Sequence record: NC_062581.1
DNA: 64,000 nucleotides
Strand: one strand, 5' to 3'
Shown: positions 53,067-55,070 of the stretch, piece by piece
How positions within the stretch are numbered: the stretch's first letter is position 1
How the letters are laid out: each line of letters opens with the position of its first letter
Made by a program: the position numbers and the translations under genes
The notes under the pieces: model-generated
What the model was told of the DNA's origin: nothing
What the model saw: only the letters and a program-made list of their open reading frames with translations
The model's database searches: none

Positions 53067-53633
53067 CTATTGGGTTTGGACACTTACCGATACACCACCG
53101 GATGCGGTGAATCTAGTAAAGCGGGGTTTGATTTCTATTCCGTACTGCTTACACCATTTACGCACTGAGTTATCTGATACACCATATTTCTCTCCAACCT
53201 TTACCATGGACATTATTAACATGTCTGCTTCTAGTTGTTCTTTATCTGGACGTTCTACTTTTCTTCGACCCAAAGCAGAACATTCCGAACTGCAATATAC
53301 ATCAAGATCTTTACTAAGTACACACTGACATTGTTCACAAAGTTTAGTTGGATATTGTTTTGGGTCAATACCCATACGGCGCATCCAACCATGCAGCTTT
53401 TGGTGTTGTGATTGCGTAAGTACTAATAAATTTTCAGGGTGATTATTCATTTTGTTTTCGTCTAGATGATGTACCTCTTCATCTTTAGCCAACGGACGAC
53501 CCATGAACTCTTCTGCTACCACGCGATGCTCATATACCCAGCCATACATCTTTGGATTCATTAAAGCATGTAAATGATCAGGTAGGTGTAGAGCAATGTA
53601 CCCATTAATAACTTTTTGTTTGATCTTTTCCAT
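53067..53633 (-). CDS. HNH homing endonuclease
   Basis: YEHRVVAEEFMGRPL...VHHLDENKMNNHPENL; CxxC...C...C zinc motif; C-terminal HTH. Confidence 0.9.
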   Translation of the reverse strand: MEKIKQKVINGYIALHLPDHLHALMNPKMYGWVYEHRVVAEEFMGRPLAKDEEVHHLDENKMNNHPENLLVLTQSQHQKLHGWMRRMGIDPKQYPTKLCEQCQCVLSKDLDVYCSSECSALGRRKVERPDKEQLEADMLIMSMVKVGEKYGVSDNSVRKWCKQYGIEIKPRFTRFTASGGVSVSVQTQ

Positions 53634-53673
53634 TTACGTCTCCCGTCCATGGTTCGAATAGATATAACGAAAT

Positions 53674-53697
53674 AATGGAAGCCGAAGCTTCCATTAG
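53674..53697 (-). terminator. Hairpin/terminator after tRNA-Asn
   Basis: TAATGGAAGC-TTCG-GCTTCCATTA, 10-bp stem. Confidence 0.75.
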
Positions 53698-53701
53698 AAA
53701 T

Positions 53702-53789
53702 TGGCTGGTAAGGCTGGACTCGAACCAGCGGTGTGCTTTCGCAAACGGATTAACAGTCCGCCCCCTGCTACCAACTCGGGTACTTACCA
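53702..53789 (-). tRNA. tRNA-Asn(GTT) with long variable arm
   Basis: U1-A72, G73, GCGGA-CTGTTAA-TCCGT, variable hairpin TGC-GAAA-GCA, CCA. Confidence 0.88.
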
Positions 53790-53797
53790 ATTTTAAA

Positions 53798-53835
53798 ACG
53801 TATCGGCAATGACTCTACCAACTGAGCTATTTACC
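53798..53835 (-). pseudogene. tRNA-like 5' half only
   Basis: GGTAAATAGCTCAGTTGGTAGAGTC (D arm) without T arm or 3' strand. Confidence 0.55.
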
Positions 53836-53858
53836 AATGTATCGACAGTTCTTCATGT

Positions 53859-53880
53859 ATACTATTACACATCAAGTACT
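53859..53880 (-). promoter_or_regulatory. Bipartite phage promoter
   Basis: AGTACT-TGATGT-GTAATAGTAT. Confidence 0.75.
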
Positions 53881-53969
53881 TTTAATCTGTATTGGGATGC
53901 CAGGCTTCCACTGGATGATTGTTTTACCTAGACTCCCTTTAAAGATCTAGCAATGCTTGAAACTATTAC

Positions 53970-54079
53970 CTCAACAGTTCCCTAGTTACTGATTACCCTG
54001 CGCGCCAGGTCGTACGTTAACTAGGTAGGCGTGGAACGACGCCTCGTTTTAGTTCTGCACCGAAGTGCCTTCTGTTGAG
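53970..54079 (-). ncRNA. Putative four-way-junction RNA
   Basis: CTCAACAG/CTGTTGAG closing stem; GCAC-TTCG-GTGC; AGGCGT/ACGCCT; CCTAGTTA/TAACTAGG. Confidence 0.6.
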
Positions 54080-54080
54080 C

Positions 54081-54158
54081 AGCCCTCCTTAGATACCGAA
54101 TCTAAATCTCTCTATCCGTGGTATGGACAGAGCGCTTTACCGATTAAGCTAGGTGGGC
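54081..54158 (-). ncRNA. tRNA-like RNA with 8-bp anticodon stem, no CCA
   Basis: GCCCACC/GGAGGGC, GCTT-AATCGGTA-AAGC, CTCTGTCC-ATACCAC-GGATAGAG, TTAGA-TTCGGTA-TCTAA. Confidence 0.7.
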
Positions 54159-54165
54159 ATTGAAT

Positions 54166-54251
54166 TGGTGGATGAAGGAAGGAATTGAACCTCTAGGAGA
54201 ACCGGCGGGGTTACAGGCCGCTGACAGTAGCCATCTGTCTCTACATCATCC
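54166..54251 (-). tRNA. Non-canonical tRNA-Tyr(GTA)
   Basis: Loop CTGTAAC; 8-bp acceptor with one U-U pair; 5-bp D stem GACAG/CTGTC; A73 and CCA. Confidence 0.75.
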
Positions 54252-54259
54252 GTAAAACA

Positions 54260-54394
54260 TTTGAAACTAACTATGGAGAAAGGCGACTCGTTTTATCTCC
54301 TGACTTGTACCCATGCACCCATTATTGAATCACCGGGCGGCTCCTTTAGTGTGATTCGGGCTGTACCTTACCGTCGTTGTTAGTTAATTTCAAA
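54260..54394 (-). ncRNA. Putative structured RNA between tRNA-Pro and tRNA-Tyr
   Basis: Outer TTTGAAA..AACTA/TAGTT..TTTCAAA; inner GAATCAC/GTGATTC and GGAGA/TCTCC. Confidence 0.5.
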
Positions 54395-54396
54395 AC

Positions 54397-54472
54397 TGGT
54401 CAGAGTGGGAGGACTTGAACCTCCGACCACGTAGTCCCAAACCACGCATTCTACCAACTGAACTACACTCTG
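54397..54472 (-). tRNA. tRNA-Pro(TGG)
   Basis: CAGAGTG/CACTCTG, CGTGG-TTTGGGA-CTACG, CCA; 76 nt. Confidence 0.96.
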
Positions 54473-54479
54473 ATGAAAC

Positions 54480-54556
54480 TGGCGGTTCCTACGGGACTTG
54501 AACCCGTGACCTCTCGCGTGACAGGCGAGCGCTCTAACCAACTGAGCTAAGGAACC
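54480..54556 (-). tRNA. tRNA-Asp(GTC)
   Basis: GGTTCCT/AGGAACC, CTCGC-CTGTCAC-GCGAG, G73 and CCA. Confidence 0.96.
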
Positions 54557-54562
54557 TAAAGC

Positions 54563-54667
54563 ATTGAGAGTAACGGCGCTTTAACCGATTAAGCTAACGG
54601 CCCTGTTGGATAGGCGGGCCTTCCGAGTCAAGGGATTTGAACCCAAGTACCTCCGTTACTCTCGAAT
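54563..54667 (-). ncRNA. Circularly permuted tRNA-like RNA, YrlA/Y-RNA-like (unit C)
   Basis: 11-bp outer stem GAGAGTAACGG/CCGTTACTCTC extended by ATT/AAT with bulged C; T-loop GGG-TTCAAAT-CCC; closed acceptor GGCCC/GGGCC; D arm GCTT-AATCGGTTA-AAGC. Confidence 0.8.
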
Positions 54668-54835
54668 CTATGCTACTTGCTGTTCACGTTTACTGACCAT
54701 GTAATCAGCATCGTTTACAGCTTCCCGAAGTATCTGTTTATCTAGTTTAAGATTCTTCCAACTTAGCCTGCTGCAACAGCGGCAATCTGCTGGACCAAAG
54801 TCATCTAAAGGACGTGGTTTAATCTTAACTTTCAT
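54668..54835 (-). CDS. 55-aa protein inside the tRNA cluster (not in ORF track)
   Basis: GGAG RBS; MKVKIKPRPLDDFGPADCRCCSRLSWKNLKLDKQILREAVNDADYMVSKREQQVA*. Confidence 0.65.
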   Translation of the reverse strand: MKVKIKPRPLDDFGPADCRCCSRLSWKNLKLDKQILREAVNDADYMVSKREQQVA

Positions 54836-54856
54836 AGACTACTCCGAGAAAAGAAT

Positions 54857-54934
54857 TGGTGTGAATGAAGAGGATCGAACTCTTGACTTCCAGGGTCACA
54901 TCCTGGCACTCTAACCGACTGAGCTACATTCACC
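54857..54934 (-). tRNA. tRNA-His(GTG)
   Basis: GTGAATG/CATTCAC, CCAGG-ATGTGAC-CCTGG, genomic G at -1, A73, CCA. Confidence 0.92.
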
Positions 54935-54964
54935 ATCAAGCGTCGAGGCAGCAACTGCTCTCGT

Positions 54965-54986
54965 ATACTATTACATACCAAGTATT
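54965..54986 (-). promoter_or_regulatory. Bipartite phage promoter
   Basis: AATACT-TGGTAT-GTAATAGTAT. Confidence 0.8.
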
Positions 54987-55070
54987 ATTTTACATTGGGT
55001 CAAAACTCTTGCAGCTGGACCTGCACTATTGCGCCAGTCCAACCACATATAGTTGTATACAATCAACTAC

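Follow-up and report, generated by a model that had tools for sequence, protein, structure and literature searches.

What is an RNA with the outline of a tRNA, an over-long anticodon stem and no CCA end doing in a phage tRNA gene cluster? Such clusters are usually read as codon supply or as anti-defence, and odd tRNA calls within them are dropped as pseudogenes or as "tRNA-OTHER". The window analysed here, a stretch of 64,000 nucleotides, is the right end of the genome of the Pseudomonas jumbo phage Psa21 (MK552327; positions 241261-305260 of the record), for which the genome paper counts eight tRNAs (PMC6544186). On its minus strand, within the tRNA gene cluster, lies the 78-nt tRNA-like element in question (54081..54158), flanked by an unannotated Tyr-like tRNA and by tRNA-Asn. 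GenBank has zero annotation from tRNA-Pro to tRNA-Asn, an interval that includes the element.

The element was delimited by sequence reading, the minimum free energy (MFE) cloverleaf and ARAGORN. Read along the minus strand, the acceptor 5' strand (54158-54152) is followed by the D arm (54149-54134), an 8-bp stem with a 7-nt loop (54132-54110), the variable region AGAT (54109-54106), the T arm (54105-54089), the acceptor 3' strand (54088-54082) and a discriminator T (54081). The acceptor stem, GCCCACC/GGAGGGC, forms six of its seven pairs, with an A5.A68 mismatch; the D arm, GCTT-AATCGGTA-AAGC, has a 4-bp stem and carries GG in its loop; the continuous "anticodon" helix, CTCTGTCC/GGATAGAG, consists of seven Watson-Crick pairs and one G.U and is closed by the loop ATACCAC; and the T arm, TTAGA-TTCGGTA-TCTAA, has a 5-bp stem and a TTC loop. 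The initial annotation had listed this acceptor, both arms and the 8-bp stem with its loop, and the minus-strand sequence 54158..54081 bears out all of them. It had also called the D arm nearly identical to that of a circularly permuted unit; one inserted T is the sole difference from the YrlA-like permuted unit at 54674..54557, which sits 400 nt upstream. Equally accurate was its description of an RNA that lacks CCA and runs straight into a four-way junction, as T54081 is directly followed on the minus strand by the GCT of the four-way-junction (4WJ) RNA.

How good a tRNA is this? The acceptor, D and T arms of a cloverleaf are all present, as are the elbow nucleotides G18 G19 and T54 Psi55 C56. 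The T arm is nevertheless the most deviant of its family, with an A-U closing pair in place of G53-C61 and a G at position 58. The ViennaRNA MFE structure is the cloverleaf (-27.4 kcal/mol, z = -2.77), equalled by three of 200 shuffles, and the 193-nt fold that includes the downstream RNA is a cloverleaf plus a four-way junction (z = -3.69, 0/200 shuffles). Coding potential over the tRNA-like/4WJ region amounts to overlapping ORFs, all of 40 aa or fewer.

Can it decode? A decoding tRNA has a 5-bp anticodon stem and a 7-nt loop at the usual distance from the elbow, and it ends in CCA; the Psa21 element has an 8-bp stem, and the GCT of the 4WJ stands where CCA would be. ARAGORN reports tRNA-Gly(acc), with the anticodon at position 37, displaced by 3. 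The Rfam tRNA model RF00005 aligns over its positions 6-65 with 19.5 bits (E = 0.54), the gathering threshold being 29 bits, and an Rfam scan of the whole window at gathering threshold leaves the element without a tRNA match. That normal decoding is impossible, as had been claimed, is upheld because of the 8-bp stem, the missing CCA and the sub-threshold Rfam score, and because none of the relatives combines a canonical anticodon arm with a CCA. The homologue in phage D6 is listed in its record as tRNA-OTHER, and the D6 paper counts 14 tRNAs (PMC11139720). For annotation, elements of the tRNA-like plus 4WJ kind should stay out of counts of decoding tRNAs.

What is the RNA into which the element runs? 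The 4WJ RNA of Psa21 is 113 nt long (53968..54080, minus strand), as defined by an alignment of 21 sequences and by the covariance model R1 (130 bits), and its first bases, the invariant G1 C2, stand one base past the tRNA-like acceptor stem. Its helices are P1, a pair of hairpins and a long arm, the last interrupted by an invariant 8x8 internal loop and ending in an RCGCG pentaloop. Across the 21 aligned sequences (alignment A5) 97.4% of cells are paired and 19 of 30 pairs show compensatory changes; none of 500 shuffles pairs as well, and register shifts are also far off. No Rfam family matches the 4WJ RNA in the whole-window scan, in permissive scans of 53600-55000 and 53875-54085 or in scans of 15 related loci, which return only tRNAs and weak noise and leave the segment 3' of the 4WJ unmatched too. 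Judged by its alignment, the 113-nt RNA is a new, strongly covarying family relative to Rfam.

Copies of the 4WJ were gathered with a 21-nt motif (20 IMG/VR contigs), with a second motif and covariance model R1, and with BLAST, which added the cultured phage TPWB-08 and the Vibrio phages 1.106.O, 1.256.O and 511E55-1. The family numbers more than 30 full-length members, from contigs of phages and from phages in culture, a sample in which divergent members are under-represented through the use of two exact motifs. The contigs that bear it span ~42 kb to 455 kb, and one of 310 kb (L016) has two copies. An R1 match is absent from the jumbo phages RVTF4 and HPP-Temi and from phage KVP40. In 185,579 bacterial and archaeal genomes the 21-mer motif has five matches, all within unrelated coding DNA and due to chance, so that the 4WJ is a phage RNA as far as seen. 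A search for a conserved protein partner, by all-vs-all BLASTP over 31 loci, yields no ORF cluster that extends beyond the Psa21-like jumbo phages. The family is testable in culture, in Psa21 on P. syringae pv. actinidiae, in D6 on DC3000 and in the Vibrio phages 1.106.O and 511E55-1.

Parts of the junction RNA also turn up elsewhere. Its 5' half (GAAGG, a hairpin, CAGAAnUAAAACG and an AGGCG hairpin) is reused in larger unannotated RNAs of phage tRNA clusters, at loci L057, L053, L060, L040, L065, L055, L039/L054, L044, L050/L059 and L052. Truncated forms of this module are also found 5-10 nt behind genuine tRNA-Phe-CCA and tRNA-Ala-CCA genes. Among the weaker R1 matches (L050/L059, L052, L039/L054, L040 and similar ones) are some with the 5' half only and some placed after a real tRNA-CCA.

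Do the tRNA-like element and the 4WJ belong together? In 28 of 28 parsable copies from tRNA clusters (IMG/VR contigs, D6 and Psa21) a tRNA-shaped element ends 0-2 nt before G1C2 of the 4WJ, and the isolate TPWB-08 shows the same arrangement. When the upstream flanks are dinucleotide-shuffled, an anchored cloverleaf detector reaches the lowest score observed in two of 420 cases and finds nothing in 318. Contigs from four metagenome runs carry relatives that retain the 4WJ, and a rhizosphere metagenome contig retains both flanks and has 82 unrelated letters at the element's place. Among the parsed copies, the tRNA-like element and the 4WJ are an obligate pair wherever the 4WJ sits in a tRNA operon.

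The covariance in relatives that had been proposed as a check is present in the 28 copies, where the acceptor, D and T stems are kept through compensatory changes. These stems are 97% paired, with at most six pair types per position, against 62% paired in shuffles, and have 131 doubly changed cells against 32 in shuffles, figures that come from our own cloverleaf-fitted parse, which is biased toward pairing. This parse was used because the MAFFT alignment of the tRNA-like elements (A6) misplaced the L013 subgroup. GG is found in 27 of the 28 D loops, and the T loops are mostly TTCRA. CCA, on the other hand, is found in none of the 28 elements, compared with 114 of 132 ARAGORN tRNA calls at the same loci; nine or ten of the 18 exceptions are the tRNA-like elements themselves.

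The anticodon arm is another matter. Together with the variable region it measures 18-107 nt across the family, against a canonical 21-22 nt, and the arms alone range from 13 to ~100 nt. One L016 copy has 5 bp and a triloop and the other ~7 bp and GUAA; L026 has 9 bp and a UUCG loop, L028 has 7 bp and a 9-nt loop, L031 has ~11 bp, and other subfamilies carry anticodon-arm inserts of 45-107 nt. Canonical arm length occurs in L021 only, with a mismatch, and the near-identical L028 has an unrelated arm. The relatives with a normal 5-bp stem and CCA that would have pointed to simple pseudogene decay were thus not found. As far as the comparison of sequences can tell, only the "top half" of the tRNA, that is the acceptor/T helix and the D/T elbow, is under selection, and the 8-bp stem of Psa21 is one draw among many.

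The large arm inserts have a regularity of their own. They carry conserved sequence within two subfamilies (L013, L015, L019, L025, L038 and L079; L014, L018, L023 and L027), as with GACGGAGUAAUUACCC, among members whose acceptor stems differ. These subfamily inserts suggest that the anticodon arm can host an additional functional module.

Of interest is the nearest relative, the syntenic homologue in phage D6 (OQ363659). The acceptor and the D arm are conserved between D6 and Psa21; four of five T-stem pairs and five of the first six pairs of the arm stem differ, all of them compensated. The D6 arm is also long (6 bp, U.U, 3 bp and a 6-nt loop). Conservation between Psa21 and D6 continues for some 200 nt downstream of the element, where 10 pairs have changed in a compensatory manner. 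An irregularity in the middle of the acceptor stem recurs in the Psa21 subfamily, as A.A in Psa21 and L031 and as a bulge in D6 and L041. There is very little doubt that the Psa21 element is a non-decoding, selected module of a composite gene. An odd tRNA call can be half of a conserved, unannotated RNA gene, here in phages from ~42 kb to 455 kb.

The Vibrio phages offer a natural contrast. Phages 1.106.O and 511E55-1 have no tRNA genes across their 47-kb genomes, and their 4WJ (97-99 bits) comes without a tRNA-like element. Some 125 nt ahead of it is a sigma-70-like site, an intrinsic terminator follows ~20 nt downstream, and the two phages are almost identical from the -10 element to the terminator; this 4WJ apparently has a promoter and terminator of its own. 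The tRNA-like module therefore goes with embedding in a tRNA operon and not with the 4WJ as such, although the tRNA-free phages are effectively one lineage. In the stand-alone form a hairpin ends one base before G1, at the position of the acceptor stem. Stacking of a helix on P1 could therefore be a structural requirement, and the joined form would then be favoured.

What would a tRNA top half do in front of a 4WJ RNA? The enzymes that process tRNA ends and add CCA (RNase P, RNase Z/BN and the CCA-adding enzyme) recognise their substrates by the acceptor/T helix and the elbow and leave the anticodon arm unread. A dedicated handle would be expected to look just like the Psa21 element, whose top half is intact, whose arm is arbitrary, which lacks CCA and which meets its neighbour at a one-base junction. 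It is somewhat more likely than not that the element is a processing and stability handle for the downstream 4WJ RNA, a reading for which we infer the transcription, the enzymes and the cleavage sites; host tRNA-trimming enzymes would probably cut the 4WJ-bearing RNA from a long tRNA transcript. A processing signal for the downstream RNA was among the initial suggestions, and it is the best comparative fit, given a pair that is obligate in tRNA operons and uncoupled in the tRNA-free Vibrio phages.

The steps can be sketched as follows. The element would be the 5' module of a two-part phage ncRNA gene, composed of an anticodon-less tRNA-like RNA and the 4WJ, and a polycistronic tRNA precursor would be transcribed from a promoter-like site near 54975. 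Host RNase P would cut between U54159 and G54158 and leave a base-paired, protected 5' end. A putative elbow-measuring endonuclease of the RNase Z/BN type, which a CCA would block, might then cut after U54081 and set the 5' end of the 4WJ at G54080. Alternatively, the 4WJ RNA might remain attached to the tRNA module, which would then protect it as a nuclease-resistant cap. The spacer ATTCAAT between the CCA of the Tyr-like tRNA and G1 of the element (54159..54165, minus strand) is 7 nt long, AU-rich and, with a U at -1, like a pre-tRNA leader; leaders of relatives have T at -1 in 17 of 27 cases and, in 12 of 27, lie no more than 12 nt from the CCA of the upstream tRNA. CCA is described as shielding precursors against RNase BN/Z in a reference as cited in PMC5291269, and tRNA scaffolds with a replaced anticodon arm are both processed and stabilised in E. 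coli (PMC3753655).

There are counterpoints to a role as a handle. An RNase P site could equally come from an ordinary tRNA gene, so that the constant use of a dedicated anticodon-less module is only partly accounted for. Conserved sequence in the arm inserts of the L013 and L014 groups hints at a function of the arm itself, the Vibrio hairpin at the acceptor-stem position could favour the joined form, and the T arm of Psa21 is, by its sequence, the one in the family that strays furthest.

How does the composite compare with known systems? Murine herpesvirus TMERs (MHV68) are a case of a viral tRNA-like element fused to other RNA and cut by tRNase Z (PMC4838037). In these, where pre-miRNA hairpins follow, and in MALAT1/mascRNA, a tRNA-like element is fused directly to a functional RNA, as in the phage composite. 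The MHV68 element is virus-encoded and non-aminoacylated, and tRNA end-processing enzymes set its boundary; such processing is predicted for the phage composite. The hallmark of the TMER type, a tRNA-like element that abuts a second conserved RNA in a partnership kept among relatives, is found here with linkers of 0-2 nt in 28 of 28 copies. TMERs and mascRNA are, however, eukaryotic and pol III-made or nuclear, whereas the phage composite has a tRNA operon, a 113-nt 4WJ partner and a freely replaced arm. The engineered E. coli tRNA scaffold is also close, as it keeps the acceptor, T and D arms, takes an arbitrary hairpin or insert as its arm and escapes degradation (PMC3753655), and family members with arm inserts of 45-107 nt resemble natural tRNA scaffolds. 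The scaffold is artificial and has a normal CCA end, whereas the phage element lacks CCA and has its 4WJ cargo at the 3' end, not in the arm. The composite would be a natural bacterial example of the principle of a tRNA top half as a handle, earlier known in eukaryotic viruses, lncRNAs and engineered scaffolds. Phage T4 has its 'species 1' and 'species 2', small stable RNAs co-transcribed and co-processed with the phage tRNAs; these are not known to be an obligate pair of a tRNA-like element and a 4WJ.

Could the two modules instead remain one RNA of ~190 nt and act in trans? By analogy with the YrlA Y RNAs, the tRNA-like half would imitate the elbow and acceptor, so that a tRNA-binding protein or RNA docks there, and the 4WJ would be the effector or regulator. 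This is a minority view, though one with several observations behind it. Every linker measures 0-2 nt and G1C2 never varies, no single-stranded AU-rich RNase E site lies between the helices, and the stand-alone hairpin of the Vibrio phages abuts P1 at the matching position. The recurrent mid-acceptor irregularity of the Psa21 subfamily (A.A in Psa21 and L031, a bulge in D6 and L041) would also fit, and a YrlA-like match of 20.5 bits exists elsewhere in the Psa21 cluster (54557-54674). YrlA RNAs (RF02553; PMC4201824) are likewise non-decoding and keep an elbow and an acceptor-like helix with no anticodon loop, but they are circularly permuted, end in a long stem, have a loop-closed acceptor and have Ro60/Rsr as partner, whereas the phage element has normal tRNA topology and lacks the Ro-binding helix. 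The RF02553 model finds no match in the tRNA-like element, the match at 54557-54674 being the sole, weak one. Conceivable docking partners include the ribosome, RNase P, enzymes that add CCA or modify tRNAs, and a defence nuclease that recognises the body of a tRNA. Against a fused, trans-acting RNA, no observation singles out a partner, no protein neighbour is conserved across subfamilies, and the tRNA-like half is dispensable in the tRNA-free Vibrio phages. It is unlikely, if worth keeping in mind, that the anticodon-less element and the 4WJ are a previously undescribed class of phage RNA that acts as one machine. Under that option the 4WJ might, for instance, be a ribozyme of a new kind or a domain that binds a ligand or protein, and its invariant internal loop and pentaloop would act on the tRNA-like elbow or acceptor end in cis, or dock against it. 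If true, the RNA would serve during infection as decoy, sponge or regulator for a host factor that handles or targets tRNAs, and the replaceable anticodon arm would be a display site for extra modules.

Does the 4WJ perhaps cut itself? A new self-cleaving ribozyme at the discriminator/G1 bond would give the tRNA-like element its mature 3' end, by analogy with what is proposed for the theta ribozymes. An invariant G1 after a variable -1 base, highly conserved unpaired nucleotides and a compact junction are features that such a ribozyme might have. Theta (minimal HDV-like) ribozymes, moreover, adjoin viral tRNAs; they too are compact RNAs directly 3' of a phage tRNA-type element, with a proposed 3'-end role (PMC10879173). 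The 4WJ differs in its nested fold, which is no HDV-like double pseudoknot, and the element upstream of it is neither a decoding nor a suppressor tRNA. The models of theta/HDV-like, hammerhead, hatchet, twister-sister and hairpin ribozymes leave the downstream RNA unmatched at E up to 10 (53875-54085, a 211-nt query), and no ribozyme family matches in that query or in five related loci. The 4WJ also stands alone, with no tRNA-like element to mature. Self-cleavage is thus quite improbable, and a tRNA-like handle for the 4WJ RNA is the preferred reading.

The initial annotation had also raised an elbow mimic with a displaced anticodon loop, directed at anticodon nucleases. Phage tRNA clusters do counter tRNA-targeting defences, and the loop of Psa21, AUACCAC, places a U second in the loop and a purine behind the triplet, so that a displaced, canonical-looking loop (U33, ACC, A37) might lure or resist host nucleases. 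The relatives do not support this suggestion. Their arms are hypervariable, with triloops, UUCG, GUAA and large inserts, and the loop is unconserved even in D6; a decoy specific for a loop cannot be the function of a family whose arm has no conserved loop, length or sequence. The lack of CCA and the fusion to the 4WJ would be left unexplained as well, and a decoy or trap of this kind has very little to recommend it.

Least credible of all is a decaying tRNA pseudogene, for example a former tRNA-Gly with 6 nt added in the anticodon stem, beside an unrelated RNA. A tRNA gene remnant does lie nearby (a 5' half, ~53852-53815), no other T arm in the family is less canonical than that of Psa21, and U73, C2-G71 and the loop CC resemble tRNA-Gly features. 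Yet a single mismatch is all that mars the four stems of the element, compensatory changes have preserved the architecture across 28 divergent copies, and every one of these lacks CCA and has the fixed junction with the 4WJ.

The handle reading places the element in a transcript with other tRNAs, and the neighbourhood is of interest in this regard. The motif TGTAATAGTATA occurs upstream of tRNA-His (54964..54975, minus strand), and the next copy (53869-53858, minus strand) lies just past the composite RNA. Genome-wide there are eight copies, four exact and four with one mismatch, and five of them belong to the minus strand of the tRNA region; the reversed pattern, used as a control, has none in the genome. 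The motif probably represents a phage promoter type that drives units of tRNAs and ncRNAs. An intrinsic terminator follows tRNA-Asn. From this layout, the tRNA-like element is probably made within a His ... Asp-Pro ... Tyr-like precursor, a transcript that we infer. Copies of the motif at 54975, 53869, 51000, 48912 and 48144 (minus strand) stand upstream of tRNA sub-clusters, and it is also found in D6 and L016.

Immediately upstream of the element is the Tyr-like tRNA (54166..54251, minus strand), which has a GUA loop, a long variable region and an encoded CCA, scores 22.8 bits with the Rfam tRNA-Sec model, is missed by ARAGORN and is unannotated. Over 200 Pseudomonas phage records, from several genera, contain a near-identical copy, in most cases without annotation. 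Between it and tRNA-Pro is a conserved, ORF-less element of ~145 nt (54252-54396, minus strand), common to D6, HPP-Temi, Erwinia phage pEa_SNUABM_9 and Vibrio phage 1.210.O and without an Rfam match.

On the other side, 3' of the 4WJ, is a structured segment (53880..53967, minus strand) with compensatory pairs between Psa21 and D6. Its consensus is roughly AGUUUCAAGC ... GGUAAAAC ... CCAGNGGAAGCCUGG, and it is present in L016, L021, L031 and L041. In Psa21 and D6 it directly adjoins the 4WJ, whereas in L016, L021 and L031 100-130 nt lie between them, and it is therefore taken as a separate element. Farther along, an orphan tRNA 5' half (~53815-53852, minus strand) precedes tRNA-Asn(GUU) and has a similar acceptor sequence. 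The tRNA-Asn itself (53702-53789, minus strand) has a long, class II-like variable arm, with conserved counterparts in L016 and among phages of the PA1C, phiHQ and BRkr types.

Do the two kinds of tRNA mimic share a history? At 2998-3360 of L016, the 310-kb relative, a homologue of the 55-aa ORF PSA21_418 is followed by the second copy of the tRNA-like element and 4WJ. In Psa21 itself (54557-54837, minus strand), the tRNA mimic with circularly permuted topology comes after PSA21_418, and it shares a nearly identical D arm with the element. The permuted mimic and the tRNA-like element may be evolutionarily related.
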